Source of the DNA: Lepidodermella squamata
Taxonomy: Eukaryota > Animalia > Gastrotricha
Direction: 5' to 3'
NCBI GenBank assembly: GCA_047495785.1
Contig: JBLDXI010000015.1
Coordinates: forward strand, 2,728,001-2,792,000
Length of the DNA: 64,000 bases
Shown: positions 850 to 32,706 of the stretch, piece after piece
How the letters are laid out: every line of letters begins with the position of its first letter
Position numbering within the stretch: the stretch's first letter is position 1
The notes under the pieces: generated by a model
What the model was told of the DNA's origin: nothing
Database searches by the model: none
What the model saw: only the letters and a program-made list of their open reading frames with translations
Made by a program: the position numbers and the translations under genes

Positions 850-2097
850 ATGATATTAAAATCCCAAATATGTCTAACGGCAGTTTTCAGCATAATAGGT
901 AGATCGGCAGGTATGAACTTTGAACTTAGAATCGTAACACGTCATACTACGATCTGTTCAATTTTAGAAGCTAGCAGCAGTGAATGTTGGTTTATCCCGC
1001 AGCGTAAGGTGAATACAAATGACACGCATCTCGCTCGATTGATCACTTGCCCAAATGGTTGTCAAGTAAGTCTTCGTAAAAGTCATAAATGTACAGTGAT
1101 GTAATATAGCAATTACGCTATAAGCAATTAAGAGAAATGTCCCTCGATGTGTGCTGTGATCCGGTGACGAATTTAACATACCGCCATAGGGATATGGAAT
1201 CTGAAGGCTGCTATGATGGGCCAGATCGTTCATCAATCTCGCAAAAGATATCTGTTCTTAAAAATGGCCTCCGGCAGCCGGTTCGGTATTGCAAAAGCGG
1301 CAAGTGCTTAAATGACGAGGCGTATCCACGCTGGGACAAGTTTCTACATTCTATCGCGAAATTTCATTTCCAGCAGATCCCACAAACCGCTAATAATTCT
1401 TCAAAGTTGCATTGTATGGTTGGCACGGGCCGCAAGAATCATCAGCAGGCGAATTGTCACGCCTGCTCACTAGAATTCCAAATAGACAATGGGAGGTACT
1501 CAAATCGTAGGTAAGTATTAAATTTCAAAGGCGTGTTAAATGTGGTGTCTCATTAAACAAAGTAGATTCAAATGCTTAAGCCCCGGAAATGAAAGCAACA
1601 TCCATTATAAATTCGAAAAGGCTGACAACACTTATCGCGGCGTGTGTTATTATGCTGATTTTTGCTTCAATCTCGAGCTATTCATAGCTTACGCATCGCT
1701 CAGCCACGAGCAGACTTCCACTCTATCGACTGGCTACTACACAGAACCGACTACTACTAAACCGGCAACAATCCCATCAACCAAGTCTGTCGCTACAACT
1801 TCAATTGCTGAAACAACCGAAACAGCCAGTTTAAAGCCGAAGAAAGAAAAGCCTACTTCTGTTCCGCTGAAAACGCCAGACTCGCCTCCTAAGAAATCTT
1901 GGTTCGTAATTATAGCCTGCATTCTTTTCTCAGTGATCGGATTAGCACAGATTGGTTACGCATGTATAAGTTTTTGCGGAGGTGTAACTCGGCCGCATTC
2001 AGACGAAGAATCGGTTGAAACGGCGTTGCTTAAAGACCGCCGAGGTAATCGAATTTTAGTGCAATCCGGCCTAACGGGAATCCATTCAATGCGCTAA
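850..2097 (+). CDS. Type-I membrane protein A1: signal peptide, two Cys-rich Ly6/three-finger-like domains, Ser/Thr stalk, TM helix, short tail. Exons 850-910, 968-1065, 1125-1510, 1566-2097 (~358 aa)
   Basis: ORFs 826, 1137 and 1540 join in frame through GT-AG introns of 57, 59 and 55 nt. Cys pattern EC..CPNGC..EGC..YC..C / HC..CHAC..C..CYYADFC; TM WFVIIACILFSVIGLAQIGYACI; AATAAA at 2129. The paralog at 28859 has the same exon structure. The fold assignment is inference. Confidence 0.8.
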
Positions 2098-2128
2098 AAA
2101 ATGTATGGACTACGAAATATTGTGTCTT

Positions 2129-2169
2129 AATAAATTAAACCAACTTCATAATACCAATTTTTTCTCTAG
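2129..2169 (+). promoter_or_regulatory. Intercistronic junction: poly(A) signal followed by an unpaired splice acceptor (candidate trans-splice site)
   Basis: AATAAA at 2129-2134, TTTTTTCTCTAG ending 2169, ATG at 2225. The same layout occurs at 30902-30944. Confidence 0.55.
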
Positions 2170-2224
2170 GTCGATTAGTTTGATTGAAAGTTTTATACGT
2201 GAATCGATTCAGTGGAATTGAGCA

Positions 2225-3915
2225 ATGGAGAACATATACAAAATTGTATTAAATTTCTTATGGATTGGACACCTGACGGCGAACGTTGGCCATGACAGAA
2301 TCAAATTGACAAAGCAAAAATTAAACGATTACCCGAGCCGTGAGCTGCCCTACCCTGGCCTTATATCTCCTTCTCATTACGTCAATGAGGGGTCGACGGA
2401 AGTTGACTTCAGCTTGAATATCCTACGCTTTTTGAACGTTGATGACCTAAGCGGCGATGTTAGTGTACTAGCTCTATTGGAAGCCAGATGGCACGACATG
2501 TATCTGGCGTGGGACCCTCGAGAGTTGAACGATACCATTTTCATCCCAGCCGATAGAATATGGATGCCAAGGATTATGCAGGTTGGACACACAGAAATCA
2601 GCTTCACAAGGGCCAATGCGAAATACGGCGACTTGGAACCAGTCGAGGTTTCTTACGATGGAACAGTTCACTGGGCATATGAGGGAGCGCTTCACACCAA
2701 GTGTCAATACAATTTCGACTTTTTCCCTAAAGATAACTATGTAGGCAAATTATATTTTTATGATTAATTTTTATCTCAGACCATTTCCAGACTTGTATTT
2801 TTGAGTTCAAGCCATTGTATGAGACTGATAAGATAAGTTTCTGGCCAGATGAAAGCACGGTTAAATTCAAGGGCCTGCCGTCAAATTGGAATGGTTCTAC
2901 TTTCGAAGAGAAAGGCTTGAAAAATGAGGATGAAGCGTTGCATATCGAAGCTACGTTATTTGATGAAGATCGACGAATTCTTTATAATGTAACTATCCAT
3001 CGAGATCAAAGCTGGTACGACGTGCATTTTCGATTTCCGATCGCCCTTATGCTATTGCTACAAGTGCCGATCTCACAGGTGCGGATCGATAAAAATGAAG
3101 CCAATATAGTCAGCGCTCGGCTTTCAATACTAGGCATCTTCGCGTTTGTCTACACATTGTCAGCCGATACGTTGCCTAAATGCGAGACAAGTATCAGCCG
3201 CTTCTTCGACCTCGCCCTGGCCGTTGTTGTTTTGGCCATATTCTTTGACTGTCTCATATGGTGTTTCAACAATGATGAGAAGCGATCGATTCACGTGCGA
3301 ACGGCTGCTAGACGCGCTACTTACAACATCACCATGTGTTTCATCATTCTAACGATCCTTGCAGGGTTTCTTTGGCCGGAGAGATTGAGAATACTGATGC
3401 TGGCGGAATACCTGATATTTTGCCTAACATTCATCGCCGCGTTGGTCTTCATTTTTATAAATGGAGAGAAACACGCGGCTGGTAATGAGTACAGTTATTA
3501 CCTCTCTGGGAAGTATACATGTATAATTGTCGATATTTACTGCCTCGTGGTTACAGTCCTTGTTGTCTTAGTGGCCGCATATATACCCCTCGGGTGGGAA
3601 TCGGGCCCCGTACTTGGAACCGTGATGATTATTTTCGTCTGCGCCGGCTCTTTCGTGGCAATTGTTTTGGGTCAACAAAGACTGCCATTGCTTGGCTTCC
3701 TCGCTTTATTCATCGAGTTTTGCTCGCAGTCAAAACGATCAGAAGATTACCGGGAAATCAGTGATAACTGGATTACAGCTGACGCTATTCGTCGCCAGGG
3801 TCAACATTACACGAGCATAATGCCTCATCCACCTTCCGAGTACATCCGTAAGCAAAATAATACCAAACATTACACAATCAATGAATGGCAGAGTTCAATT
3901 ATTAAAATCGCGTGA
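2225..3915 (+). CDS. Divergent Cys-loop ligand-gated ion channel subunit 1 (non-alpha-like, extra TM helices). Exons 2225-2740, 2791-3915 (~546 aa)
   Basis: Removing the 50-nt intron 2741-2790 restores C-x13-C (CQYNFDFFPKDNYTC). Also ARW-D-YLAWDP, IWMPRI, V-YDG-V-W, pre-M1 R..WY...F.FP and the M2-M3 DTLP motif. Confidence 0.9.
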
Positions 3916-4589
3916 AAATTCTGAATTTAAAATCCATTCCTCAGACTTGTTCGAGATTTCGAAATGCGCGTTTCCAAAAAACTTACAAATGTTGGATTGG
4001 CTTTTCATATCCAAGAATATTCCTTTACCTTATTTTATCTCTGTAAAGTGTATTGGAAATGAGATGCAGCTTCAGCCAACTGCTCTGATAAGTCAAGCAA
4101 TGCCACGTTAATATGTTTTTTTAATAAAATCTGAAAATTTGCGTTCTATTCTTACTATTCTACTCATCACCATCAGTTTCTAATAATCAGGTGCTACAGT
4201 GTGATTCAAAAAGGCCGCCCTACCTTACGGTTATTATTTTTTCCCTCTTGTTTTTTCCCCAAAAAGTCCGACTCGAAAACAATTTTCGCGAAAAAATAAT
4301 AATAGCCAAGGATTAAAAAAATGAATCTAAAACAACAGATAAGACTATGATTCAATGGCGACTGACAAGAATGGATAGGCAGGATGAAGAAGATAGGGAA
4401 CAGTTTAACTTTTGACAGAGAAGCTCCTGCTTAGCATTTTGAAGTTCCGAAAAACTACCATGGGAAATTAATAATTGAATTCGAACTATAACTCTAAATA
4501 GCCAAATCTGCCGTTAAACTACTACTGTATTCAACAAAATAATATAAAAATAATAATGAAAAAGGGCTGGCATTTTTCTAAAAATTTTG

Positions 4590-4814
4590 AAATTATACTA
4601 AATTTGCTGATCAGCAGCTGATCAGGGGCACTAAAGGTGATTATTATCAGCAAATATTGGATGCAAAATGACCCCTCATCAGGCTGAGCTGATTAGGGTT
4701 CATTTCAATATAATCCCTGATCAGGGTGCATATTACCCCCTGATCAGCTATAGTAATGACTAGGAGCTATGACCCCTGATCAGACCCCTTATCAGGGGTT
4801 AATTTTTTCCAGTG
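4590..4814. mobile_element. One end of a CACTG-type (EnSpm-like) element with (CCC)TGATCAG subterminal repeats
   Basis: Several TGATCAG / ATCAGGG motifs ending in TTTTTTCCAGTG. Partner end not found. Confidence 0.4.
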
Positions 4815-5399
4815 CAAGAGAAAAACCGCTGCACCCCCTTGACCGCGCGCGGCGGCTAAGAAAGAGCCAGTCACTGTACGCTAATGAGTTAATTATTATC
4901 TTTCCGGTGCCGCTGATCAATTTCATCACCTCAAGAGTCGTGTTTTCGAGACTGGGAAATTAGGGCGGAACGCGAGCACGCAGGCCGATTTCCAGGAACG
5001 CTAAACGCTACGCATATCACGGACAACTTCAATCTGTTTAAGAGTTGGGCTAAGTTGGGCGTTGTACTACCGCCGCTGCCTTCCGCTCGCTTTCATCAAC
5101 ACCACTAATCTTCTCGAGCGGCTCTTCGACGAAATGAAAAATCGCATCAATAAACTATTACCGCCGGGTTCCCGCCCTTTTCGCTTTATTTTCACCAGGA
5201 GATCAGTGTTTTCCACGTGGCCGGCGGAAGGCACCCAACGTTGTCGAAATAGATGGGGCCTAGTTTCTCGCCCTAACCGAAAAAAACAAAGAAAACGAAA
5301 CCGCCAATTATAAATAACCGCCAAGTCGTCAACTTCAAGGCCGGCTATACCACTTCCGGGCGTCCTACTCGGGCCGATGTTCCCAACTAGGGTGACCTA

Positions 5400-5831
5400 C
5401 CGTCAACTGGGGTGACTGTGGGCAGTGGGGTCACTTCGACATGCCAAAATAAGGTGACTAAGCATGCCGAAAATCGAAGATGGCAAGGTAAATACCCGTG
5501 AATGGGGCGCCGATGCATAGCCTGGAAGAAGGACAAATCGAAAATTTGCGTATGATTTCTATTTTGATGTCAGCTTCTATTGCGCCATCACCGATGTTTC
5601 AATTAATATAGAAATTAACAAAAAATGCCGCAACTTTACCCATTATTTCATGTCCCAGAATGGGTTATGTTGTTGCGCATTGTATACATACAGACTGGCT
5701 TTTCCTTGGGCTATCCAGCGGTACCCCACTCACGGGTATTTACCCTACCATCTTCGGTTTTTGGTATGCCAAATCACCCCATTTTGGCATGTCAAAGTGA
5801 CCCCACTGCCCACCGTCACCCCAGTTGACGG
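5400..5831. mobile_element. MITE with long TIRs (Tc1/pogo-like, TA flank)
   Basis: CCGTCAACTGGGGTGAC...GTCACCCCAGTTGACGG, with inverted homology extending over 100 bp. A related end lies in the gene B intron near 21648. Confidence 0.85.
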
Positions 5832-5890
5832 TGCGTAATCTCGAGAGCTTGCATTTGACCGTGTTTAATTACAGTGCGTTTCACAATTAT

Positions 5891-6045
5891 ATCGTTAGCG
5901 TCGTTGAATAACTTAGATTTATAGGCTTGTTTCAAGGTGATAAGTGACAAGTAAAAAATCATTTGTTTTTGCCTCTCCATTCTCGTATAAAAGCCGCTTT
6001 TTTACTTGTCACCCGTCACCTTGAAACGGATGTAAACAAGCCTTT
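5891..6045. mobile_element. Partial copy of the hairpin MITE at 22971-23163
   Basis: Shares ATCGTTAGCGTCGTTGAATAA, TGACAAGTAAAAA and GGATGTAAACAAGCCT. Confidence 0.75.
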
Positions 6046-6047
6046 AG

Positions 6048-6290
6048 TTACGCGACATGGTAATACAAGACTCGAGTCAGCGAATCTATAGAGCCCGAGC
6101 ATATCAGCTCGTTATTCAGAAGTCTTTTCACGCAAAAACCCGCAATATTGGCGATAATTTCTTCCCCAATCAGGGGCAGTGAAGCTTCATATTGCATGCC
6201 TTTCTGAAGCAATTCATCTTGGGCTTCAAATTCATCCCAGTCCATGAAGTCATGGGGCTTTGCAACCTTAAAATTGAAAATAACAATCAT
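6048..6290 (-). pseudogene. Possible remnant of a P-element/THAP-type transposase C-terminus
   Basis: IIANIAGFCVKRLL...LIC resembles the YIAG..V.K.L...C segment of this family. Short and isolated. Confidence 0.3.
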
Positions 6291-7021
6291 GAAACAAAAT
6301 TCAATGTTAAAATGGCGATTGTTTACAGGGTGTTTACAGGGCCGCCAACTTCCATTTTAACGGGATTTTTGGAAGTTGGCGGCCCACTTGTCAGCGGCCC
6401 ACCCTGCCAATAAGCCACTCGATTGCCCTAGTCGAGTACATCGTGAAAATATATAAAGCAGCCAACTTTGTTGAATATAATAAGAATATAACGGTAATAA
6501 AAAATGACATTTTTCGTTATTTTATGCGCGAACAGTACGCTCAAGTTGCTCTTTATTTACTGCCTCCAAAGGTGAGCAGAAGAAGGATTTCTGAAACCTA
6601 AATTTTTTAAATGGGTATCTGGCGTGTCTAAGTGGCTACTTACGAGTACATCAATAGTCGAGTACATTATCTGAAATTATATGGACATAGGATGTAGACA
6701 CAATGGGGCTTGAGGCCTTTCAACAATTTTTTCTGAAAAATCGAAAATTAGTTCCGTCAAAATGAAAAATGGCCATCTGAGCAAAGAAAGGTGGCAGCAA
6801 TGTGATGGTTTGCGCGCGAATTTAGCATCGCGCGCGCTGCTCACAAGTAAAAAAAGTTGAAACTGAACTGAGTTCATTATCTCGTTTCTAACTCGATAAT
6901 GCGAAAATATGAAATCTGCGGAAGAAATACTTTCTGAACTGAGCAACTGGAAGGAGCTGAATTTATCTTGTAAGTCGCTTAAATAATTCCCCATTCCTTT
7001 GTTTCACTTATTTATTAATTA

Positions 7022-9319: not shown

Positions 9320-12300
9320 CACTTTCACTGCGGCGGGCAGTAATTACTGCTCTCCGCGGAGGATTTTCACCGCGCGGCACGCACACTCCGCGGAATTCTC
9401 GCGCATTTAATTAACGCATGTTTCAACACATAAAAAACGCCTTTTATTCTCTTGCAGTGGTTTCTCGAAGTAAAAACATCAACAAAAACATGAGCAGTTG
9501 AAAATAATTTCCGAAAAACGAAATAATTTATTCATTTTTCTTCTTGTAAGCACTGAGCCAACTTTCTCGAGAGGGAAGTGGACAACGGGAAATTGTAGTA
9601 AAGAATTGACGCTATGATCTGCAGACACAAAGCTGAAAAATAGGAGATGTTATTTACAGTTGGAAGTAGAACGCTTATCAAGAACGGAGGCGTTCAAGAC
9701 TCAAGACACGCCTCAATAAAAAACGATGGCAAAAAATCCAACATTTTCATCACGCGCCGCGCCGCGCAGCCGATACAACGACTCGCCCCTCCGGCTTTCG
9801 AAATAATCGTTATAGCTAAAATGACATTTCCTTCAAAAATAGACGTGGAACTTCTTGTCGTAATGGCACCGCGCGGGCCATTTTTTACGCACACCTAAGT
9901 ATGTGTGCGCGATAATTAGCCCACACGTACCACAACCTATGAGATTTAGCTATAGCGCGAATTTACGAAATGTTGTACCTTGTGACTCTTACCTATAGGG
10001 AATAGCCGTAATAGTGGACATGATGCCATTTGCCGGTGCAACTGTCGTGAAAGGCAGGGTAAAAGCCATTTTTGCCCTTGGGGCAGAATCTGCATTCCTT
10101 CGAGGCTTTGCTCCCGCACTGTAGGCACACGCGAGTTGACTTTGGCGCGATAGAGGTCAGCTCGTGGTACGGCTTTTCTTCAGTTCGAGTCGCCGGTTTT
10201 GGCTTGAATTGATCAGCGATCACATCCCATTTCTCGCCAATGAGGCATTTGATCACGGCGAGTCGAAAATCTTCAAGCGTTATTTTGATGCCGGTGTTGA
10301 ACTTGTAGATCTCGTAAGCGTTCAACAAGATGTACTCGAGAGTGCGAAAGTACACCTTTCGGTACCATTTCAGCGACTTCCTCAGAAATTCGTAATAAGA
10401 TACCTGCAAATGACGTAATAAAAATTAAAACCGAAAAAAACTGAATCGAATGAATCGATGGATAATGACAGCATCAAAACGAAACCAATGGAAATTCAAC
10501 AAACCTTTTGGTCATTTTTATCCACTCCATTCATCAGAATGTTGTAGATGAGGACGTGCAGCGGCTTAGGAAGCCGATCTTGGGGAGGGCGACGTGCTTG
10601 GCGCGTGTTTTTCGCTTTCGGCCCGTTTTTAGACGCGCCTTTCCCGGTCTGATCCGGCAACTTGCGTTTGCGCGCGGCAGCGGCCGGTCCCGGCTTTTTC
10701 CTTGAATCAACTCGGCTAGGCGCCTCTTACTCGCCGCATTCCGAGCCTGAAGATGACCCATCCTCATCGCTGCTCTTATCGTCTTCCACAATCTCGTCAT
10801 CAGATGAGTCTGCACCCGCTTCAAACGAAGATGAGCTTTCGTCGGCCTGGTGACCCGCAAAATTCGGTTCGATAACCGCCTCTTCTTGCAGCGGTTCGAA
10901 GCTGGCGTTCGCTGAATTTTCGTCGCCCGCAACGTTGATATGCGACTCGTCGGCGTTGGTCGACAGGTACTTCTCGATAGAAGCTGTTTTGCGACTGGTG
11001 GGTGGGTTGGCCCATACTGGCGGAAATTCAGTTGATAGCATCAAAACATCGCGCTTGTCCTTCCATTTGGAAACATAAACAGGGCCGCTTCTCAGCCACA
11101 CCATTTCATTGCGCTGGAGTTTATGTTGTACAACAAGTTCAGGATTTCCCTTTCGCTTGGGATTCAGAGTGCCTATTCAATATAAAATGTTGACGTAAAT
11201 TTGTGTGATAGGTTGAGATTTCAACCTCAACAACCGATCTGGTGTGACCAGGGCCGGCTATGATTCCGTCTTGCTCGCACGAAGACGCTGTGTAAACATG
11301 AAAGCGTAACGCGATACCGGTTTCAGATTCACACAACATGTAGATCTGCGATGAAAAAAAAAGAAATAATCGGCGAATAAAATTCCAGCGAGTCAACATC
11401 GCTTTTTGGTATTTTTGGCAAATTAGCTAGGATTTCCAAGTCAAAAATAAAATTCGCGAATTTCGTTTTCTGGCGAAATCATTTTTTTCATTTTACGACA
11501 TTTCTAAGCAAATTATTTACCTTGATTCCAAATTTATGGCGCTTGTTTTTTATGTAAACTTTGAACCCGAGGCGCCCGCGGAACAACAGGTTTTGCTCAT
11601 CGATTGAGAGGTACCTGTGCGGCGAATAGATCGATCGCATGCGATCTTGAAAGTGGTTGAGAATAGGCCGGATCTGTTGATTAGAAAAAAAATAGATTAA
11701 ATTAAAAAACAAACGAAAAGTCTTCAAAAAATGTTCAACGAGTAAAAAAATCGAGAATATATTTTTATAATCTACCTTCCAGAGCCTGTCGTTGGGTTCG
11801 AGCTGCTCTTTCAAGTCGTTATTCACAAAATGAAGGCAGGATAAAATCAGCAAAAATCGATCACGAGACATGAGCGTGGCGAACGATGGAGTTGCGGTTA
11901 GCGGCTCCGTTGACCAATATTTGTTGAACGTTGACTTTTGGACTAATGTCATCAGCAGACAAATTCCAGTCCAAACTCTGAATTCCTCTGGAACCAGATT
12001 TTTCCAAGCCAAAATTCGAGCATTGGGCAGAGTGTTTGCTTCTATCTTCTTTTCGGCCTGGTCGTTGGTTTCTTCGCAAATCATTTTCACCATCACTTCG
12101 TCGAAAATGAGCTTGAATACGCCATACGGGTCCAGTTGAGAATCAGGTTGAACGAGAAGCCGCCGCGTACCAAGAAACTCGAATACCAACGGCGGCTCTA
12201 ATAACTGATCTATCCAGTCGTCGTCGTCGACGACGTCAGACATTACAAATAATTTGGTAGCTAAAGGATGATAAATGATAAGATTATGTGATGAGGCATA

Positions 12301-12320
12301 TTTTGCTATTTCTGTCAATA
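9320..12320 (-). mobile_element. piggyBac element with a spliced, defective PGBD4-like transposase
   Basis: TTAA|CACTTTCACTGCGG terminus. Motifs MSRDRF..IL..LHF, SIDEQ..FRGR..YIKNK.HKFGIK, YMLCESETG, WKDKRDVLMLST, RKSLKWYRK and a C-terminal Cys-rich domain. In-frame stop at 10727. Other TIR not found. Confidence 0.88.
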
Positions 12321-13120
12321 AAAAAATGCCAAATTTATCTTCAAGTTTTGATTTTTCCCCGACGGAATCCCCTCTATAATTTGATACAGGTTCATTCCAA
12401 GCACAAATCTGGTTGGTTTCTTTGCAAATTCTATTCCTTCAAGGGTCGAATCAACTAGGATGAGGCTGTCGATACAAAAAACGTGAAATTTTTCTCAGCT
12501 GCCGCGCCAAAAAATCTGAAGACGAAATTAAATACCGTATTTTTTCACTTATCCTGCTGGAAATACCGGAGTATGTTGGCTTTCGGGGCTCACCTTTACA
12601 TACCAAATGTCTTGGAAAATAACTATTTTTAAGAATTCCTAAGATATTGCGGTTGGACATAATATAATTCTAAGTTCGAAAACAGTTCTAAGACCTAATC
12701 AACACCTAGATTGAGGAAATCGAATCAGCGGTAGAGTAGAATTTAGGTTCCGCTGGTCGTCGTGATTTTCATGGGTTGAAAAAGCTTTATGTTGTTACGA
12801 AAATCAGAGGCTGTTGAAAATTGGCGCGCGCAACTCGGAGAATGAGACGAGCAACGCTGCTCGCGCGTTTCGATCTCGCCCGTTATTGTGAACCACTCAG
12901 CTATTATTTCAAAATATGCGCAACAATGGAGCGCGCGTTATGTTGGCACTTGACTCCACTTGACTACACCTGGCTAAACAAGCGATAAATATCAGATAAT
13001 TGTCACCCAGCACACACACAAAACGGTGCAAGTCTGCAAAACAGCTAGAAATATAAAACAGCAACGAGAAAAATGCCAAGATGTTAATTTCAAAATATCT
13101 CTGTAAATGACTGGAAAAAA

Positions 13121-20973: not shown

Positions 20974-22861
20974 ATGAAGCTGCTGGCTGCGATTTTCTTC
21001 TTATTCGCTGTATTCTCTTATTCGATTAATGAATCATCATCTACTGAGATAGATAAACCCCGAATACTATGCCGCAGCTACTCCCGAAGTGCCCTCGTCC
21101 CAATAAATGACAGCACTGCTGAACACCCGCAGATATACGTGAATGCCTCCGAAATAACCATCATCAACTGCTCAACAGCGTGCTACGTATTATCAATTTC
21201 AGTTCAAGTTATTCAATATATTTCTAATCATTTAACAGAGAGACATTGCGATACCACATTCAGCAAAACCGCTTCGTCCTGCGAAAATCTCGGAAGGTTG
21301 CTTGGATGAATATCGATCTGGACCAAGTTATCGACTCATTAAGACCAAAAACGAGACAAAGATCTCCTTGCTGTGTTTCCGGGATTGCACTTCACAGAAT
21401 CCTTATCCAAGCGACTTGGGTGCGAAGATACTTTTTGAAACCATGGGTAATAAAACAGTGCCGCGGACGCGCACTAAGGTTCATTGCCATTACGGGGAAG
21501 TTCGATTAGGCAATAGCTCGAGGCTGGCCACTTATTGCTCGGTAAAATTTACAACAATATTTAAAAAACAAATTTGTCAACAATTACTTCCTTTCAGACC
21601 AAATATTTTCCAGTGAGTCACAGATTCAAGTAAGTAATTTGATCTACACCGTCAGTTGGGGCTATTCGAACGGCGAAAAAAATTACCCCTGATTTTTTCG
21701 CATTTCAGGAGAGAATCCTATTTCCAACAAGTGTAGGCTCGGGGAAAAAGTTCACGAATTGGCAAAATGGCAACTAAGAAACTTTAACCAAAATTTACCA
21801 ATCTCGCAAACATAAATGCTCGCAAACTACGACCGATGAAGTCGACCGGCCTCGACTTTATCGCCTTCAATTTCTAATTTAATTTCTAATTTCTGTAAAC
21901 TATTTTTACCAGGTTTGATTACACGGTTCAGGTCGGCATGGAGGATGGTTTCGTGTTCAGGGTTTCCTTATATTCGTCGGGAGATTGGAATAAACTTTAT
22001 TATCAAGTCGACTGTGCGAATGGCGACTATTGCGTGAACAAAGCAGATTTCAACGAGCTTATAGCGATGACAAACAGTAAAACCCAGGATCCGATGGCAG
22101 TTAGCAAATCTACGTCAACATCCAGCTCAATATCGACCGACAGCAATTCTACGTCAACATCTAGCTCAACCTTGGCCTACACCTTCATTTTCACCTTCAC
22201 CACCACCATGAAAACCAGTGCAACAATATTTCCTAATCTCACTGTAAACGAAACCAAAAAAGGAAATTACGATAATTTTACAGTGAAAGATGTCAACTCT
22301 GATTGGTGGCATGTAATTCCAATCGCTGTTACAGTGGTACTAATAATACTGTTGCTCGGCATCTATTGCTACTGTCAGAGACACAAACGAAGCTCGGACA
22401 GCAGCTCGACAGCAGAGCGGAACCCGCGCTCGGGTGGAGACAAAAAAAGATCTCCGCCAGACAAACTCAGACAAAGTGATGGAGCTGGTAAGAGCTTGCT
22501 CGCTCACGGAACAGTCCGCTACACTGCTCCCAGATCATCGCCGAGGCCTACCACCCCTCGCATAGGTCAGTATTCTCCGTCTTCACAGGCCCTGGCTTCT
22601 GGCGAAAGCTCGAGCGGAACATCAGCTCAAACCAATGTCGCGAAGGTCCTTTTCCACCGTGATGCTGGCGAAAACAAACTAAGAGACAGCCAACGTAATG
22701 AAAACGTAGCTACTTACAGCTTGCTCGAGAATAATGATTCCGGTGGTTTAGTTCTGTCCGGGTCTCCCAGAAAAGACGTCTTCATTGGTCCCGGATCCTC
22801 GCTGAGGCCTGCTCCGAACCCCAGCTCAACCCCATGTCGCGCAGGTCGCAGCTCTTGGTAG
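20974..22861 (+). CDS. Type-I membrane protein B, paralog of A1. Exons 20974-21186, 21239-21541, 21598-21629, 21913-22861 (~498 aa)
   Basis: Signal peptide MKLLAAIFFLFAVFSYS; CSTACY followed by an intron; SEGC; HCHYG..YCS; CANGDYC; S/T stalk; TM WWHVIPIAVTVVLIILLLGIYCYC. All introns are GT-AG and frame-consistent. Confidence 0.75.
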
Positions 22862-22970
22862 ATCTTGGCAGCTTGGTAGCCCAGTAATTCTTAGCCGCCC
22901 AGTAGGCTTGCCCTGTGGCGTCCACCGAAAACTCGGGGAGTGCGCCTGGCGTCCATCCGCAGTATCGCAG

Positions 22971-23163
22971 TATCGTTAGCGTCGTTGAATAAGTCGGATT
23001 TAGGCTTGTTTACATTCCTTTCGAGGACACGGATGACAAGTAAAAAGAGGCTTTTTTAACGTGAATGAAGAGGCCAAAACAAAAGATCTTTTACTTGTCA
23101 CCTATCAGCTTGACATGGATGTAAACAAGCCTAAATCCGACTTATTCAACGACGCTAACGATA
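22971..23163. mobile_element. Hairpin MITE (~190 bp)
   Basis: TATCGTTAGCGTCGTTGAATAAGTCGGATTTAGGCTTGTTTACAT with its exact inverse at the other end. Further copies at 5891 and ~27670-27766. Confidence 0.88.
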
Positions 23164-23229
23164 TCCTAGCCAACGGATTCGGCGCAGTCGATATTCGCCG
23201 GCATTTGAAAATGCGGTGGAAACGAGCTC

Positions 23230-24690
23230 CTCACTGGAATCGATCGGCCTCTTGTCTGGTGGCGATGCACATGATTTAGTCTTGGCGATGTTCAGCTCAA
23301 GTTCGATCGCGGTTTCGCGTAGCCTGCAGAACTGCTGGCAGAACCTGGAACTAAATCGTCGGAGAAGTCAAGGTCGTAAAGCTGTTGAAGTGAAAAGTGA
23401 ACAACATCCCATAATTCTGCCGCTCAGTGACAGCACTCACCACGAAATCAATCGCAACTCAGAATAGAATAGGTGAAAGGATGCAGCCCTGCCTTAAACC
23501 AGAGTTTACTTCATAGCTCTCACTCTCAACTCCATCAGCACACGACACCCAAAGCCGGTGTAGAACATGGCGATGAGTCGCACAATTTATTCCGGGACGC
23601 CATAATGACGGGGGATCTTCCACAAGATTTCGCGGTGAACGCTGTCGAAGGCCTTCTTAACGAAATTAATGAGCTCTGGCGTTTTACCGGAGTCACTGCT
23701 CGTCGATATTCCGCAGTGCAAAATTTGGTCGATGCACCCTGGAAGCGAGCGAAAACCTGCCTGCTCTTCTCGCAACAGAAAATGCGTCCCTTGTGGTCCC
23801 TTATGGTCCCTAATGGTCCCTTATGATGCACAAGATGACCCGAAAAAATACCATGCTGGGAGAGGGGAGCTTTGTGCCGAATCTCTCGAAATATGATACT
23901 CGAGCGCGCTGGCTGTGGTATCCACATCGGACTTGGGCATTTCGGCCGTAATTGCGTTGCATCCAGGAGCTTTCCAGTTCTATAGGCCAGGTTTGCCGTT
24001 TTGATCTCGCTAAGGGAACTCTTTGGAGAGTTCCATGTCGACTGCCATGTCGACTGGGGATGGCTGAGCTTTGACCCCAAGAGCATGTTAAACACATTGT
24101 TGAAGTGCTTGACCCACGGCGCCATATGCTCCCGGTGCCATCTTTGTTTTTGAGGGCGCCGAACAACCGCCTCGCTTGACACCTCCGAGAAGCTCGATCA
24201 CCTCGGAGATCACGAGAACCTCGACCTTACTTCAGGATCCGTCAGCTTGTCAACGTCGACTTGGTTTACCCTTCGAGGCGCCTTCAGTCGTACAGAGCCC
24301 ACAACTAGCTTGTGACCACTGCCCACGTTGAACTTAAATATCCTGAAGAGTTCTTTCCCAGCGGCTGTTGACCGTGATGTGGACGATCTGGTTTAGCGTT
24401 CCATTGTCGTTGGACCGCCACTTGAGCTTGTGAATCTCCTCTTGCGGAAACAACGAGCAGGAAACTCGATCACCAGTTCGTTGGTTGCGCAGAATTCGAC
24501 AAAGCGGTCACTGTTATCGTTTAGGGTGTCCAGCGAGTGCTTACCACTGCACTGTTCGTGGCCGGAGTTTTCCGATTCAGCGTTCAAGTCGTTCATGTCC
24601 CTCATGACCAGAAGAAGATCATGTCTTGGCGCAAGCTTAACTTGCGCTTGAAGCATGTCGTATGATTGAGATATTGCTCAGGTCGCGCGC
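23230..24690 (-). mobile_element. Decayed RTE-like non-LTR retrotransposon (APE + RT fragments)
   Basis: APRHDLLLVMRDMN, NDNSDRFVEFCATNELVI, KAFDSVHREILWKI..YGVP and GLRQGCILSP, with many frameshifts. Confidence 0.8.
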
Positions 24691-25145
24691 GGCTTATTTG
24701 CAATTTATATGATAGTAAAAACAAAAATTAATTATATTTTGTTGTTATAAAAAGCGCCACGGTATCCGAAATTATCACGTGGCCAACTTTTTTTTTAGAG
24801 AATTTATGACTCTGCGTTTTGCGCACAGGTCCAATTGTAAACCCCGCGCGCTTTGATCGGACGGAACTACGATGAGTTAAGTAATGAAACTTGGTTCTGC
24901 TGAAAATAAGAGCCAAACGCGTTCGTTGATTATTTCAAGCTTGATAATTACTAATATTATATTCCTTGCAAAGGCTCTGCAATCCACAAAGCGGTTTGCG
25001 CTTTCTCTTTAATTTAATTTGTTTCTGTTTCATCTTTGAGCCAAAAGAATAATAATATACGTTTTTGATATTACATTTAAACATAAGAATGCGAGGCCTA
25101 AAGCAATTTTTTAATTCTGTAGAATTTTAAATTCGCGAATTAGCA

Positions 25146-26933
25146 ATGTTCCGATTTTCAATGCTCATTTTACAAATCACAGCCGCTTCCACAGCTTATC
25201 TTGATTTGGGCACTGCAAAATTGAATCTGATCAACGATCTATTGAATGGATATCCAGGGGCTAATTCGTCTCATCCGGGTCTTGTTGCTCCATTGAATTT
25301 CATGAATGACTTTGAGCATATTGGTTCATTTCTTGGATTACTTTCGAGAGAGGAATTCGCGGCTATGACGTCGACCTGGGTTACGCTAAACTTCACAATC
25401 CGTCGCTTTCACGAGGTCGGTGATTTGAACGGTGAGTTGACTGTCATCGCCCTCGTCGAAGCACGCTGGCGCGACCCGAAACTCGGTGGTCCGTTGTGGG
25501 AACGATGGGGAATAGAGAGCACAATCATGCTTCCTGCTTACAAAATTTGGCTGCCACGCATTGCTCTGGACGGCCATAGCGACTTCGGCTTCAGCAGACC
25601 AAATGCTCGGATTGGAGACCTCGATTCAGTGGAAGTAACACCGGATGGCTGGGTTTACTGGGCCTACGAAGGTCCAGTGAATACCAAATGCAGCTATACT
25701 TTCGAAGGCTTCCCGCACGACAAATACGTTAGTTTTTCGCCCTTGAAATTTACACTTTATCCTATTTTCCTCCAGGATTGTAAATTTCTCTTCAAACCAG
25801 TCTATGAAGCTGATAGGATCTTCTTTCATCAAGACAGCAGTGGGATCGTGAGGTTCACTGGCCTTCCAAGTAATTGGAACGATGAGCGAAAGCATTACAA
25901 TCAGCCTGACTGCTGCAAAACAGACGTGCATTTCCCCAAGGTTGCTGGTGCTGTCGAGTTCGGCTTTACGCTGTATCGTAATCCGACATGGTTCAACTGG
26001 CACTTCAAGTACCCGATCACTTGCCTGGTTCTTTCGCAGCTGGCAATTAGCATAATTCCACTTTGGAACGCCGACGTCGCCATGGCAGTTATCGCCTTGC
26101 GTGTAAGTGTGTATGGAACCTTCTTTTTTATCTACTCACTTTCAGCAGATGCTTTGCCGAAAGCTGACACTGAAATTAGCATTTTTTACGATCTTGCTGT
26201 GACTGTTGTTTTCCTCGCTATGAATTGTGACATCTTGATATGCGCTCTCTTCAAACAAGACCACAACTCTGGTGATTTTAAACTGTGTGGTGATGTAGAA
26301 CAGCAATGCGGAAACCCCGAGGAATGTAATAGGCGCCGTATAATCCGGAATGTCATAAAGTATCCGGTCGTACGTGCGTCCCGCGCTGTGATCGTCAGCT
26401 TTTTTATCGGTACAATCACCACCGCCTACTTCAGCCCTGAAAGAATGAAGTTGTTCATGATACTGGAATATTTTTCATTCTTTGTGGCTGTGATACTTTC
26501 TGCGTTTTATATTCTTACGACTAATAGCAAAGGCGTCAACGCCAAATCAATCACTGAAATTGAACACCTGAAAAGGGTTTGCGTCGACCTGCCAATTTTA
26601 GCCGTATTGTTTTTTAAATTTTTACTTCTCTTGGCCATTCCTATATTCCCGAAAATTTCGCAATATTTGTTATCACTGTACACGGAAAGGATGGTAATTA
26701 TTTTTTCTGGGGTTATTGTCTTGATTTTTCTGATGTTCAGCTTGAGGTTGCCATTCATCGGACCTCTCTTGAGATTATGCATTAAACCCAAATGCTGCAA
26801 GAACTATAAAGAGAATTCATGGTACAAGATGGTCGAGCGTAAACCTATTCTATTGACGATTGATACTTCAGGTAGAACAGACAAGGCTGCCTCCAAAGCC
26901 GCCTCAATCAAAGAGGAGACTCCTACAACGTGA
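25146..26933 (+). CDS. Divergent Cys-loop ligand-gated ion channel subunit 2 (vicinal CC in loop C, alpha-like). Exons 25146-25727, 25776-26933 (~579 aa)
   Basis: The 595-aa ORF contains an in-frame 48-nt GT-AG intron at the same position as in its paralogs. Removing it gives CSYTFEGFPHDKYDC (C-x13-C). Also IWLPRI, HYNQPDCC and DALP. Confidence 0.9.
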   Translation: MFRFSMLILQITAASTAYLDLGTAKLNLINDLLNGYPGANSSHPGLVAPLNFMNDFEHIGSFLGLLSREEFAAMTSTWVTLNFTIRRFHEVGDLNGELTVIALVEARWRDPKLGGPLWERWGIESTIMLPAYKIWLPRIALDGHSDFGFSRPNARIGDLDSVEVTPDGWVYWAYEGPVNTKCSYTFEGFPHDKYVSFSPLKFTLYPIFLQDCKFLFKPVYEADRIFFHQDSSGIVRFTGLPSNWNDERKHYNQPDCCKTDVHFPKVAGAVEFGFTLYRNPTWFNWHFKYPITCLVLSQLAISIIPLWNADVAMAVIALRVSVYGTFFFIYSLSADALPKADTEISIFYDLAVTVVFLAMNCDILICALFKQDHNSGDFKLCGDVEQQCGNPEECNRRRIIRNVIKYPVVRASRAVIVSFFIGTITTAYFSPERMKLFMILEYFSFFVAVILSAFYILTTNSKGVNAKSITEIEHLKRVCVDLPILAVLFFKFLLLLAIPIFPKISQYLLSLYTERMVIIFSGVIVLIFLMFSLRLPFIGPLLRLCIKPKCCKNYKENSWYKMVERKPILLTIDTSGRTDKAASKAASIKEETPTT

Positions 26934-28858
26934 AAATCAAAACTTACGCACGGTCAGGAATTTGTTGAGTTGAAACTAAAAATATCGCGCGCCCGAACTA
27001 TTTTTAGCTCCAAGTTTGGGTTAGCCGCAGCTAAAAAAAGTGTAACTCGGACGGACCAAGACGTTTTCATATTGTTGAAAATATGAATATTCATAAGGTG
27101 CTAATTAATATCCCGACGCCCTAAAAGTTGATAATTACGTCAGAAAAATTCTGGGAAAATAATTTTTGATTTGTTTTAACCTTATTTTTCTGCAATTTTT
27201 CTGCAATTTTAGACACTTGAATAAGACCGTCCTAGTTTCATGACATCTCATGAATATATTCATATTATTGAAACTACCCTCCATCTCTTGGAGTTATTTT
27301 TGTTCGTGAAAAAAGGCGTAATTATGGTTTGTTTTTCAAAAGATAAACAGCCTCATTTCGCACGTGCGAAAAATTTCAACTAGCGTCGTCTCCATTCCAC
27401 CGTGCGGATCTTTTGATGGTCACTGTACATGGCCCAATTCTCTACACGCATTCACCCAGTGAGTCGGGCTTAGGTCGGGGGCTTGAATTCAGCATGAAAA
27501 ACACGATTTCGAGAACGTATCGTCGACATACCCTGGTGATACTCCGAACCCTATGATCCTTGAATAGCTCGAGATTAAGCTCGTTTTTATCAGTTGTATG
27601 GTTATCAGTTAGGTTACAAGTAGTTATTCGCACAAAGATATCTGTTTTGCCTATTCGTTCATTTGAAAATTATGTTACCCATCACCTTGAAACTGACTTG
27701 AACAGTTAAGTGAGGTTGAGTAAGCTAACATGAGCTTTAATAAGTGCTTTTCAACGGCGCTAACGAAATCACCCTATGTGGCACCATTGAGAAACGCCTG
27801 TTTATACACTGCTATGTACTGCACCCTCCTTGTCAATCATTGTACATATCGTCAATAATTTTTCGGTTTAATAAACGAATAATGGGATTCAGACTATCTT
27901 TTAATTGAAGCCACGAAAATATGTTTGGCGACATCTGATGCCAAGCCGTCGTCCCGATCTCAATTTCTGGCTGAAATTCGTGATTATTCAATATCTGCAA
28001 TATGATAATCGTGAATGAAAATGGAAATAAAAAGATTCGAAAAAGTCAGTAACCTGTCAATAGATAGGATAGACGACATTTGTGACGTTGCAAGCGAAAA
28101 GTAGGGTTTGGCGAATTTTCTGTATTTTCCAGCTAATCGCGTTGACTTGGAGTCGGCCGATTTTTGAATTCCATGATGTAAATACTCAGTTTTCTTGGGA
28201 ATTTTATATTTCTGAATTTCAGAGCCTCTGCGATGCTCCCACGGCTGCTGAGTTGAATAAACTGACTCGAACAAATCATCAAACGGGATATAACTGTGAA
28301 CCTTGGCATTATTTAACTCCCTATTTAAAATGTATAACTTGATTTTCGAAGCAATTTAACGCGATTGAATAAACATAATTAAAAACGAAAACCTTATTCC
28401 TGAATTCATCGAACACATTTTGAATTTCTAGTTTTCATTTTTCTTCCGTTACCCGGGACACACTGGCGTTTCGAAGAATTTCGAATTTGACGAAAATCGC
28501 TTGACGGATTCAGGTCATCGAAACCTTGGGAAAGGATCTCTTTCTTACTCGAATGGAATCTCCAAGCATGAAACCAATGCTCCTCCGAGTTACAATTGCC
28601 AAACATTGCTTATTATTTTTCGCACTTGCTGTCTGCTATTTGCCCAGCTTTTTCAATGAAAGTTATCTGTTTAGTAGCCATGGCACACGTAGATAACCAT
28701 ATGAGCTAGCTGGCCAATGTAGCATACTGATAAACCGTTTCGTTCATCGCACTTCCGTGGAAAAGAATGAATGCGCATGGAGATAACGCCGACATAGATT
28801 CACCTGGAGGTCAGCTTTCCTTTCATTTTCAAATTTTCAGTCGCCCAACCGACCTCAA

Positions 28859-30221
28859 ATGATATTAAAAGCACAACAATGTCTAATGACACTTTTCATT
28901 TTAATAAACGATAGATGTGCAGGTAGGAGCTTTGAATTTTTAACCTAAATGCGTGATACAACAGTTTATTTAACGTCAGAAGCCAGCAGTGAATGTCGGT
29001 ATATCCCGCTGGGTAAGGTGAAGGCAAATGATGCGTATCTCGCAAATGTATTAATTTGCCAAAATGGCTGTCAAGTAAGTCTTCGCGATATAAATAAACT
29101 CACAGTGATGTAATTTAGCAATTACGTTAAGCAATTAAAATTAAGATCTCTCGAGGTATGCTGTGATCGGCTGACGAATAAAACTCACCGTCTCATTGAT
29201 ATGAAATCTGAGGGCTGCCGTGACGGAACAACTCGTCCATCAATCTCGCAAAAAATATCCGTCCTTGAAAATGGCCTTCACCAGCCGATTCGGTATTGCA
29301 AAAAGGAAAAGTGCATGGATGATGAGGATTATCCTCCCTGGGACGGGCGGCTGCAGTCAATCGTCAACTTGCAACAGAAGCACATCCCGAAATCCGCGGC
29401 TAACCCGTCGAGGTTGCGTTGCGTGTTAGGTACTGGCCCCGGAAAAAGTCAGGCGAATTGCCACGCCTGCTCACTTGAATTTCAAATAGACAATGGACGG
29501 TACTCAAATCCTAAGTAAGTATTGAGAAATTCAAAAGTGTGTTCAAATGTGGTGTCTACTTATTATTACACGAAGTAGATTTGCATGTTTCAACAGCGAA
29601 AATAAAAACAGCATCCAGTTTTTTTTCGAAAAGAACGAAACCACTTGTCGCGGCGTGTGTTATTACGGTGATTTTTGTTTCAATCTCGAGTTATTCCAAG
29701 CCTACGAATCACTCAGCGTGCCCACCACTTTGTCACAGACCTCAACTTTATCGACCGGCTACAAAGAACCAACAGAGAAACCAACAACAATCTCGTCGAC
29801 AAAGTCTGTCGCTACAACTTCAACTGAAACAACCGTAACACCCAGGTTAAAGCCGAAGAAGGACATGTTGACGACCGAGGCAAGGAACCCGATTCCTAAA
29901 TCTGTGCAAATCACTATTGTGGTTTTGGCACTCTTTGTTTTCGCCGGGATAATAGGCATAGCGATTTTGTTTCACCTATGGAAACGCTGTCGTAAAACTC
30001 GGAAGCCACCTAATAATGTAGATCAGCCGTTGGAATCAAACGCCCGGTTACTTCAGACAGTCAATGAAGGGCCGCATTCATTCGAGGGAAATTCGAGGCA
30101 AGCAGACAAAATTTGCACCCTGCGTTCGGGAAATTCGAGGCAAGCAGACAAAAATTCGAGCCTGCCTTCGGTGAATTCGAGGCGGTCTCAATTCAGCTTA
30201 ATAAACAATGATAATAGATAA
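28859..30221 (+). CDS. Type-I membrane protein A2, close paralog of A1. Exons 28859-28922, 28980-29074, 29132-29514, 29579-30221 (~394 aa)
   Basis: Colinear with A1, including intron sequences. Shares QANCHACSLEFQIDNGRYSN and RGVCYY.DFCFNLELF. TM ITIVVLALFVFAGIIGIAILFHLW. Confidence 0.8.
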
Positions 30222-30222
30222 T

Positions 30223-30848
30223 ATTTGTTCCAATAGCAGCCATGGCTGTTAAATTTCGACTCCTATGAATGTCCTGAAAATTGGGCTAGATTGGTGCTTA
30301 TTAGAGATTGGCGATTCATCAGATTTTCCTTCGCGTTTATTTCACTTCACAGTAAATTTTGAGGGAAATCGCTGCAAATGAGAAATCAGCAATCTGCAGC
30401 CGTGCCCGGGGATACGTGCCCTGTGGTGCGTAGAGCGATTATTACCGTAAACACTCGTACTTCAGGTTGGTCTAACGGTCTTATCTGTGCATTTTAGTTC
30501 AAAAAACAATTATATTCTAATCGAATCTATTTTATATTCGAATCACCCACCTCATGATAATGGTTAAGGGTCCATCTAATGATCAAGCCTCCCTTAAGTA
30601 CGAGTTTTTACGGAAGGCCATTTTTTATCGAAGCGGAAAAAATCGCAAAATAGAGCAGAAATAGAGAAAATGTTTCTTTTCAAAAATGTAAGAATTTGCC
30701 GAAAAACCGGCCGCGTTCGATTGTCCACTACGCGGTCTCTATTGTGCGATTTTTTCTGCTTCCGTGAAAATTGGCTGTGGGCGATTCACCGTCCGATGAC
30801 GTCTTGACATGGGCTAAAATTAGCAACTGGGTTAATATTGGAACAAAT
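30223..30848. mobile_element. Insertion with 13-bp TIRs between A2 and channel 3
   Basis: ATTTGTTCCAATA...TATTGGAACAAAT. Absent from the paralogous A1-channel 1 junction. Confidence 0.6.
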
Positions 30849-30901
30849 TTTGTAACTAACAAGCAAAACGCTTGAACTGCGGTTGAATTATTCTAGCTAA
30901 A

Positions 30902-30944
30902 AATAAACCAGCTGTTAAATATCTATGCATTTCTCTTCCTCTAG
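30902..30944 (+). promoter_or_regulatory. Intercistronic junction, second copy: AATAAA plus unpaired acceptor
   Basis: AATAAA at 30902-30907, TTTCTCTTCCTCTAG ending 30944, ATG at 30999. Confidence 0.55.
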
Positions 30945-30998
30945 GAAAATTATTTTATTGAAATTTGTCCATACGAATCGCACAAGTGGAATAGTGTA

Positions 30999-32706
30999 AT
31001 GGTAATCGTGTACAAACTTGTAATAACGTTTATCTTGATTAAACACCTGTCTGCGGGCGTTGGCCACGACAGAATCAATTTGACGAAGCAAAAACTACAC
31101 AATTACCCGAGCCGTGAATTGCCTTATCCTGGCCTTGTATCTCCGTCTCATTACTTCGTCAAAGATGAGATAACTCAAGTCGAATTCAGTTTGAACATCC
31201 TACGCTTTCTGAATGTTGATGACTTGAGCGGCGATGTTAGTGTACTAACACTATTGGAAGCTAGATGGCACGACATTCATCTGGCGTGGGACCCACGAGA
31301 GCTGAACGATACAATTTTCATACCAGCCGATAGAATATGGATGCCAAGGATTATGCAGGTTGGGCACGCAGAAATAAGTTTCAGCCGGGCGAATGCGAAA
31401 TTCGGCGACTTGGAACCTGTCGAAGTTTCTTACGATGGAACAGTTTACTGGGCATATGAAGGCGCGCTGCAAACCAAGTGTCAATATAATTTCGAACATT
31501 TCCCTAGTGATAAATATGTAAGAAAATTATATTATTTACGTCAAATAATGATCCATTATTTTATTTCAGATTTGTAATTTTGATTTCAAGTCAGTTTACG
31601 AGACTGATAAGATACGTTTCTGGCCAGATAATAGCACGGTTAATTTCAAGGGCCTGCCTTCAAATTGGAATGTTACTTCTTTGGAAGAGAATGGCTTGGA
31701 AAATGAGGATGAAAGATTGCATATCGAAGCTATTTTATTAGATGAAGATCGACGAATAATTTACAGCGTAACTATCCATCGGGATAAAAGCTGGTACGAC
31801 GTTCATTTTCGATTTCCAATCGCCCTCATGCTGCTGCTACAAGTACCGATCGCACAGGTGCCGATCGACGGCAATGAAGCCAGTTTAGTCAGCGCTCGCC
31901 TTTCGATACTAGGAATCTTCGCGTTCGTCTACACATTGTCAGCCGATACTTTGCCCAAAGCCGAGACAAGTATTAGCCGCTTCTTTGACCTCGCCCTGGC
32001 TGTTGTCGTTTTAGCCATATTCTTTGACTGTCTCGTATGGTGTTTCAACGATGATGAGAAGCGATCGAATCTCGTACGAACAGCTGCGAGACGCGCTTCT
32101 TACAACATCACCATTTGTTTCATAATTCTAACGATCTTTGCAGGGTTCTGTTGGCCGGAGAGATTAAGAATACTGATGCTAGCGGAATACTTTATATTTG
32201 GCATAACGTTCATCGTCGCGTTGGTGTTCATCGATATAGTAGGAAAGAAAGAAATCGCAGTTGCTGGTGAAAAGGACGATTATCTCGCTGGGATACTCAT
32301 AAATGTCGATATTTACTGCTTCGTGGTTATAGCTGTCATTGTCACAGTGGCCGCTATTATACCCCTCGGGTGGGAATCGGGGCCTGTTCTTGGAACCGTG
32401 ATGATTATTTTCGCCTGCTTCGTCTCTGTCGTGGCAATGGTTTTCGGTAAACAAAGGCTGCCATTGTATGGCATCCTCGCCTATTTTATGAAAAACATTT
32501 GCCCGCATTCTTCAATCGATCAGAAGATGAAAGATCGCGAGAATGCAACTGGCGCCGTTCGTCCTCGACGGAAACTTTTTCAACATCGCACGAGCATCCA
32601 GTCTCTTCCATCTTTAGAGGACATCCGCCCACAACGTGCCAAATATTACAGCCTGAATGAATGGCAGAGTTCGATTATTAAACACGCGTATGATGTTGAG
32701 GTCTAA
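30999..32706 (+). CDS. Divergent Cys-loop ligand-gated ion channel subunit 3, close paralog of subunit 1. Exons 30999-31517, 31570-32706 (~551 aa)
   Basis: Removing the 52-nt intron restores CQYNFEHFPSDKYIC. Long identical stretches with 2225-3915. Confidence 0.9.

Follow-up and report, generated by a model that had tools for sequence, protein, structure and literature searches.

Described partners of Cys-loop receptors and paired receptor genes

Most auxiliary proteins of Cys-loop receptors came to light singly, through genetic work, and the genes that encode them are dispersed. The closest precedent for co-expression via gene order is the deg-3/des-2 pair of Caenorhabditis elegans, in which two functionally dependent subunits of nicotinic acetylcholine receptors (nAChRs) are encoded in one operon, according to the passage of a later article that refers to the original work (PMC4258610, citing Treinin 1998). 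In the present study, a stretch of 64,000 nucleotides of the genome of the gastrotrich Lepidodermella squamata was analysed (contig JBLDXI010000015.1, positions 2,728,001 to 2,792,000 of the forward strand; the whole stretch is called the window below). In this window a gene encoding a single-pass, cysteine-rich membrane protein lies upstream of a gene encoding a divergent Cys-loop channel subunit, and this arrangement occurs three times. The likeness to deg-3/des-2 lies in the head-to-tail genes on the same strand, which in the nematode serve one Cys-loop receptor and are co-transcribed. However, both nematode genes encode pore-forming subunits, whereas the upstream gene described here encodes a non-channel single-pass protein, and the co-transcription of the pair is suggested by the layout of the locus.

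Other precedents concern the proteins rather than the gene order. EAT-18, MOLO-1 and LEV-10 are single-pass non-channel proteins that particular nematode nAChRs need or are tuned by, and in this respect they resemble the upstream proteins of the window. EAT-18 is essential to an nAChR, and its gene is genomically entangled with lev-10 (PMC7173930); the criteria for an auxiliary subunit quoted in the same paper are that the protein is non-pore-forming, binds the receptor directly, alters its properties and is required in vivo. Nevertheless, no sequence relationship with EAT-18, MOLO-1 or LEV-10 was found, and their genes are neither adjacent to receptor genes nor co-duplicated with them. Besides, EAT-18 has only 71–78 aa and the opposite topology. 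Shisa7, an auxiliary subunit of the GABA-A receptor (PMC8025742), likewise crosses the membrane once, in type I orientation; it has a Cys-rich ectodomain and a disordered cytoplasmic tail and acts as a regulator of a Cys-loop receptor. The difference is that the Shisa7 gene is not linked to receptor genes, and no similarity was detected in searches that did not include a direct comparison with Shisa7.

Small disulfide-rich extracellular membrane modules are also found in lynx1, Sleepless/Quiver and C4.4A, and these bind nicotinic receptors (PMC4839075, PMC6502960, PMC7053344). C4.4A has a similar general plan, with two modules followed by a stalk rich in S, T and P. In the proteins of the window, in contrast, the cysteine framework of the Ly6/uPAR (LU) domain is lacking, no Pfam match was obtained, and the anchor is a transmembrane (TM) helix, whereas the Ly6/uPAR prototoxins are held by glycosylphosphatidylinositol (GPI). 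In a brief literature search, no paper was found in which the genes of a channel and of an accessory protein are coupled like this.

Organisation of the locus

The window consists of eukaryotic DNA; its G+C content is about 42%, and its GT..AG introns are short. The gene models were assembled by hand from lists of open reading frames (ORFs) and from the sequence, and all splice sites and frames were then checked by script. Six genes were established in this way, all on the plus strand and forming three same-strand pairs, in each of which the membrane-protein gene precedes the channel gene. Pair 1 comprises A1 (exons 850–1065, 1125–1510 and 1566–2097; 377 aa) and Ch1 (exons 2225–2740 and 2791–3915; 546 aa). 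Pair 2 comprises B (exons 20974–21186, 21239–21541, 21598–21629 and 21913–22861; 498 aa) and Ch2 (exons 25146–25727 and 25776–26933; 579 aa), and pair 3 comprises A3 (exons 28859–29074, 29132–29514 and 29579–30221) and Ch3 (exons 30999–31517 and 31570–32706; 551 aa). All introns of the six models are GT..AG and span 48–64 nt, apart from one of 283 nt. Transposon remnants aside, these are the only recognisable host genes in the window, and a tblastn search of the whole window with A1 and Ch1 as queries revealed no extra or unpaired copy of either family.

The first-pass annotation of this DNA had described three pairs in the same order and on the same strand, and all six genes were indeed found at the positions it gave. 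It had also taken the pairs to be independent, which turned out not to be the case, since pairs 1 and 3 go back to one recent segmental duplication and the retention events are effectively two. Its view that the linkage is older than this duplication is correct, as the two-gene order predates it. The pairing of a membrane-protein gene with a channel gene is real and old.

The explanation that we prefer, with a probability of roughly 50%, is that the locus represents a two-gene unit, which would have undergone at least two duplications, each time in its entirety. The upstream gene is predicted to encode a type I membrane protein that is lineage-specific, rich in cysteine and glycosylated. The downstream gene encodes a very divergent subunit of a nicotinic-type pentameric channel with a canonical Cys-loop, segments M1–M3 and what appears to be an enlarged C-terminal membrane region. 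The ancestral spacing was presumably about 130–145 bp, and the gap would have held a poly(A) signal and then an unpaired 3′ splice acceptor just ahead of the start codon of the channel gene. The two genes would be co-transcribed, be it in an operon whose transcript is separated by trans-splicing or by means of a shared upstream exon. More tentatively, the membrane protein may be a partner of the neighbouring channel, with a part in its assembly or trafficking, in gating or in the capture of ligands. A link between the two genes is argued for best by the conserved short junction and the long-maintained open frame of B.

Junctions between the paired genes

The two genes of pair 1 are separated by 127 bp (2098–2224, plus strand). 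This junction contains an AATAAA at 2129–2134 and a polypyrimidine tract plus an AG that ends at 2169, for which no donor is visible, and the ATG of Ch1 follows at 2225. It aligns with the approximately 125 bp ahead of Ch3 (30875–30998), including the AATAAA, the acceptor and the ATG. The remnant of the ancestral junction in pair 3 occupies 30852–30998 on the plus strand, with an AATAAA at 30902–30907 and an acceptor AG at about 30943–30944, followed by the ATG of Ch3. In pair 2, an acceptor-like site is present and there is no AATAAA within 146 bp.

Pair 3 has acquired an insertion of 632 bp (30220–30851), which starts exactly at the stop codon of A3. It is bounded by 16-nt inverted repeats (30220–30235 and 30836–30851, 94% complementary) and contains two nested hairpins (30445–30613 and 30617–30775). 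The insert is similar to miniature inverted-repeat transposable elements and looks like a non-autonomous DNA transposon; no second copy of it was found in the window. When its length is subtracted, the spacing in pair 3 is 145 bp, versus 127 bp in pair 1. The gap in pair 2 (22862–25145; 2284 bp) is richer in G+C than its surroundings. It has a short repeat in common with 5889–6043 and contains degenerate remnants of reverse-transcriptase (RT) ORFs on the minus strand (23459–23775). The proposal that the larger gaps had been filled by transposons applies well to the repeat-bounded insert of pair 3, but only weakly to pair 2, where the match to RVT_1 (23459–23623) has an E-value of 0.0012 and the RT remnant matches none of the other long interspersed nuclear elements (LINEs) of the window.

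A fusion protein of the upstream and downstream genes was also considered. It was ruled out by in-frame stops before the ATG of every channel gene, in Ch1 a TGA 6 nt ahead of it, and by the hydrophobic N-terminus that the channels have of their own.

Pairs 1 and 3 combine the features of an operon layout, namely the same strand, a short gap (in pair 3 once the insert is set aside), a signal for 3′-end formation and, ahead of the second ATG, an acceptor that has no donor. As far as can be judged from the sequence, this layout would suit trans-splicing of an operon transcript, or the use of one upstream exon by both genes. The second arrangement, without an operon, would make a nested locus with a shared promoter, of which the cholinergic VAChT/ChAT locus is an example. 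A non-coding first exon upstream of the membrane-protein gene would then be spliced alternatively to the acceptor of this gene or to that of the channel gene. Acceptor-like sites precede the ATG of the upstream genes and of the channel genes alike, as expected for such a locus, and eat-18 and lev-10 show that accessory genes of nAChRs can have exons in common (PMC7173930). However, no upstream exon was identified, and the AATAAA located 30–35 nt before the channel acceptor in pairs 1 and 3 fits 3′-end formation of the upstream transcript followed by trans-splicing. It seems quite improbable that the locus is of the nested type.

The upstream membrane proteins

A1, A3 and B encode type I membrane proteins with a signal peptide, a Cys-rich ectodomain, an S/T-rich stalk and one TM helix. 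The ectodomain of A1 (about 215 residues) contains 15 cysteines in two blocks, nine in module 1 and six in module 2, which terminates in C-x5-C-x-N. After the stalk, the TM helix occupies approximately residues 313–337, has cysteines at its cytoplasmic end and is followed by a tail of 40 aa. The model of A1 is supported by contigs of X1, a shallow run labelled 'RNA?' in which many contigs diverge from the window, by as much as 10%. One contig skips exactly 1066–1124, so that intron 1 of A1 is seen spliced out, and another breaks off at 1510 and then reads like exon 3 of a close paralogue. Contigs of X1 also lie over Ch1 (2294–2777 and 3141–4108), some of them without a mismatch. As this run contains both Ch1 sequence and spliced A1, the two genes are probably both transcribed.

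A3 is 55% identical to A1 at the amino acid level and retains 14 of its 15 ectodomain cysteines, the first having been replaced by Tyr. It contains an in-frame TAA at 28946–28948 (codon 30), directly past the signal peptide, and is otherwise open, with conserved splice sites and with neither a further stop nor a frameshift. A 42-nt in-frame GT..AG stretch (28923–28964) could remove the TAA if it were spliced; this candidate mini-intron is shorter than any intron in these genes and found no RNA support.

No homologue of this family was found by a word-index protein search, Pfam, a PDB profile search, an Atlas feature search or metagenome patterns, with A1 exon 2 or exon pieces as queries. The PDB profile search with exon 2 gave no match, the metagenome scan with A1 exon 2 revealed no relative, and the top scores of the Atlas search with A1 exon 2 (0.66) are meaningless. 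By the tests run here, the upstream proteins do not appear to be assignable to any known family.

B has the same order of parts as A1: a signal peptide, two Cys modules (six and four cysteines), an S/T stalk and a TM helix. Its tail of about 160 aa is rich in S, P and R, and its frame runs without an internal stop through 498 codons in four exons. In both genes exon 1 stops one residue past C-x3-C in phase 0, and a phase-2 intron lies 10–13 residues past a conserved 'CS'. Module 2 of both carries three anchor motifs in the same order, and the motifs common to A1 and B are (S/T)K(L/V)HC..G and C-x3-D-[FY]-C-x-N. The position of B relative to its channel gene is also that of A1. Because of the shared architecture, the intron positions and phases, the anchor motifs and the position beside a channel gene, B is accepted with fair confidence as a highly diverged homologue of A1 and A3.

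On sequence comparison alone, the homology of B is poorly supported. In the tblastn search of the window with A1, B was matched at an E-value of 0.8 only. The Smith–Waterman comparison of the A1 ectodomain with B gave a z of 4.1, equalled by one of 500 shuffles; the z was 0.7 for the A3 ectodomain and about 2 for single modules. A hidden Markov model (HMM) of A1 and A3 scored 2.5 bits on B, which was matched by 64 of 2000 shuffles (p ~0.03).

The state of A3 and B also bears on whether the upstream genes matter at all. They might be decaying passengers, A3 being already a pseudogene and B perhaps frameshifted, with only the channels functional. The TAA in A3 agrees with decay, as does the higher dS of the upstream genes (0.72 vs 0.39 in the channels). 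In B exon 2 (21239–21310) a second frame, which would restore one more cysteine, has H-C-D at the place of C-C-D in A1 and runs into a stop at 21307–21309, which could mean a frameshift; it may be the trace of an old one, or chance. However, A1 is intact and is spliced in the 'RNA?' run, the chosen frame of B is open throughout and gives an even number of cysteines (six) in module 1, and A3 has kept all its splice sites, the single TAA being its only stop. Furthermore, the two ectodomain modules each have a dN/dS well below 1. Decay of the upstream genes therefore seems quite unlikely as a general explanation of the pairs.

Comparison with three-finger domains

The LU domain consists of about 80 residues with ten cysteines (at least eight) in fixed spacing, and its bridges are 3–26, 6–13, 19–39, 45–63 and 64–69 (PMC4839075); four to five bridges are given elsewhere (PMC7053344). 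The first-pass annotation had labelled the upstream proteins as Ly6/three-finger-like, and such domains could modulate the channel as lynx1 or Sleepless do nicotinic receptors, being tethered by a TM helix and not by GPI. All four modules compared close with a cysteine, three to five residues, a second cysteine and an N one to three residues further on (C-KSGK-C-LN, C-YYADF-C-FN, C-FRD-C-TSQN and C-ANGDY-C-VN). This small loop is reminiscent of CCxxxxCN but differs from it. The spacing of the first four cysteines of module 2, read by eye, resembles that of short three-finger toxins. Exon 2 modelled alone is all beta-strand, and two LU domains with an S/T/P-rich stalk occur in C4.4A (PMC7053344).

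Nevertheless, the cysteine pattern departs from the definition of ten cysteines and five bridges (PMC4839075). Module 1 has nine cysteines in A1 and six in B, module 2 has six in A1, seven in A3 and four in B, the CC pair of module 1 stands in the middle of the module and not near its end, and an N-terminal C-x2-C was found in neither module. None of the exon pieces of A1, A3 and B was matched by an LU-type Pfam family (UPAR_LY6, QVR, Toxin_TOLIP, Activin_recp and the like) at E ≤10, in a scan that covered half-domains only, because introns split both modules; the PDB profile and Atlas searches were blank as well. The model of exon 2, which holds no complete domain, has a predicted local distance difference test score (pLDDT) of 42.6 and is far too uncertain for a fold search. 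The Ly6/three-finger label is thus unsupported, though not refuted, and modulation of the channel by domains of this fold is considered unlikely. The idea that the ectodomain consists of two recognisably repeated modules was rejected, as the modules have no detectable mutual similarity (z below 0).

The channel subunits

The downstream genes had been proposed to encode divergent Cys-loop receptor subunits, and this identity was borne out by domain, motif and structure comparisons. Pfam Neur_chan_LBD, the ligand-binding domain (LBD) family, matches Ch1 (E 3.2e-18), Ch2 (1.1e-11) and Ch3 (1.9e-18), all above the curated cut-off. All three channels have C-x13-C with an F-P motif between the cysteines once the intron is removed; this phase-0 intron lies inside the Cys-loop, at the same place in each gene. 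Ch2 looks like a single ORF because its 48-nt Cys-loop intron stays in frame. The AlphaFold2 (AF2) model of Ch2 has a mean pLDDT of 72, rising to about 90 across the LBD and M1–M3, and Foldseek with this model retrieved nAChR, 5-HT3, GABA-A and glycine receptor chains at E ~1e-17 with a probability of 1.00.

Ch1 shares 74% amino acid identity with Ch3 and 32% with Ch2 (over 546 aa, E 3e-78). Against 1.84 billion representative proteins, a profile built from Ch1, Ch2 and Ch3 obtained 1739 matches at E ≤0.001, the named ones being nAChR-like. The top match (135 bits) is a bivalve gene model with four LBDs, and no close relative was found in this profile search. A metagenome scan with channel exon 2 revealed no relative. 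The word-index protein search with Ch2 was blank, as it was with a LINE ORF, and the lineage seems to be poorly represented there. The two metagenome contigs with the best single-domain channel matches have no gene upstream that resembles A1, and these contigs are too distant to count. The channels are a deep, lineage-specific branch of nicotinic-type receptors.

The matches of the channel profile are all confined to the LBD and M1–M3, with none beyond profile position ~395, and Pfam Neur_chan_memb was not matched in the channels. Five to six hydrophobic segments follow M1, and the model of Ch2 has four helices past M3 (pLDDT 50–85). In all three genes (3280–3915, 26290–26933 and 32100–32706) about four further helices or hydrophobic segments lie past M3, in the region that a loop and M4 occupy in ordinary subunits. 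The C-terminal region of Ch1 also has a sub-threshold match to Pfam DUF4870 (E 0.001, 19.5 bits vs a cut-off of 25). A vicinal cysteine pair occurs in the loop-C region of Ch2 (residues 240–241, window 25860–25870) and is absent from Ch1 and Ch3; by comparison of motifs and not by alignment, it corresponds to the pair of alpha-type nicotinic subunits. On the same comparison, Ch1 presumably has Leu where the loop-B Trp is expected. An apparently degenerate agonist site and predicted extra membrane helices make these channels unusual.

Divergence rates and the meaning of the linkage

Between A1 and A3 the overall dN/dS is 0.49 with a dS of 0.72, and between Ch1 and Ch3 it is 0.44 with a dS of 0.39. 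In the channels it amounts to 0.29 in the LBD, 0.15 in M1–M3 and 0.77 in the C-terminal part. Both families are moderately constrained and fast-evolving. The upstream genes and the channels thus differ in dS within one duplicated segment; gene conversion between the channels or a different codon constraint is a possibility. The two families branch alike, as (1,3),2.

The pairs could also be a matter of passive linkage, if two unrelated genes were tandem-duplicated in one segment and the pairs merely remained unbroken, the upstream gene having no role in the channel. Much of the history of the locus is compatible with this: pairs 1 and 3 clearly stem from a single segmental duplication, independent retention events number only two, A3 is interrupted by a stop, and both families evolve fast. 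Nevertheless, the four-exon frame of B has stayed open for as long as Ch2 took to reach 32% identity with Ch1, and the short junction has been conserved together with its signals despite the insertion. Linkage without a functional connection is considered rather unlikely.

Several points weigh against the preferred reading, a co-duplicated and co-transcribed unit whose membrane protein would serve the channel. The alternation of the two families follows by default when a two-gene segment is duplicated, even if its genes have no functional connection, and matching tree shapes with three pairs arise by chance in one case of three and carry little weight. The dN/dS of 0.49 between A1 and A3 means moderate constraint only. 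The similarity between A1/A3 and B appears marginal by sequence alone, and of several tests only the Smith–Waterman comparison of A1 with B stood out. The contigs of X1, where coverage is very low, leave 2052–2293 uncovered and provide neither a loose end at 2170 nor a spliced leader or a junction-spanning read, and the divergent ones among them may come from paralogues or another strain. Finally, the stop in A3 stands beside an intact Ch3, which argues against a strictly obligate one-to-one pairing.

For the upstream protein, the role of an auxiliary subunit or co-receptor can only be inferred, and a chemosensory function is pure speculation. It is also doubtful that each enlarged channel subunit has a dedicated single-pass Cys-rich co-receptor, in the sense of a bicistronic unit whose two genes are duplicated and diverge jointly, with pairwise co-evolution of receptor and partner.

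Other features of the window

A LINE family is represented by two copies, at 57694–61944 (plus strand) and 34793–36867 (minus strand), which share 60–80% amino acid identity and contain an Exo_endo_phos endonuclease followed by RT ORFs. Another RT element, distinct from this family and equipped with a zinc-finger ORF, is located at 48892–52665, and a fragment of a piggyBac-type transposase at 11488–12318 (minus strand). Just upstream of A1, the word depth in the DNA-like run X2 rises to about 4000 at 600–720, versus about 40–140 elsewhere, and many contigs break at 635–643, which resembles the edge of a high-copy repeat. An Rfam scan of the window gave no match.

Significance

If the linkage is passive, the locus remains a clear case of a fast-evolving receptor array, and nothing beyond that. 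If the preferred reading of a co-duplicated functional unit is true, the pairing by gene order would offer a genome-readable route to partners for orphan channels, and the locus would supply natural matched and mismatched pairs for tests of specificity. Given the apparently degenerate agonist site and the predicted extra helices of these channels, a partner that supplies ligand binding or help in assembly would be plausible to seek.

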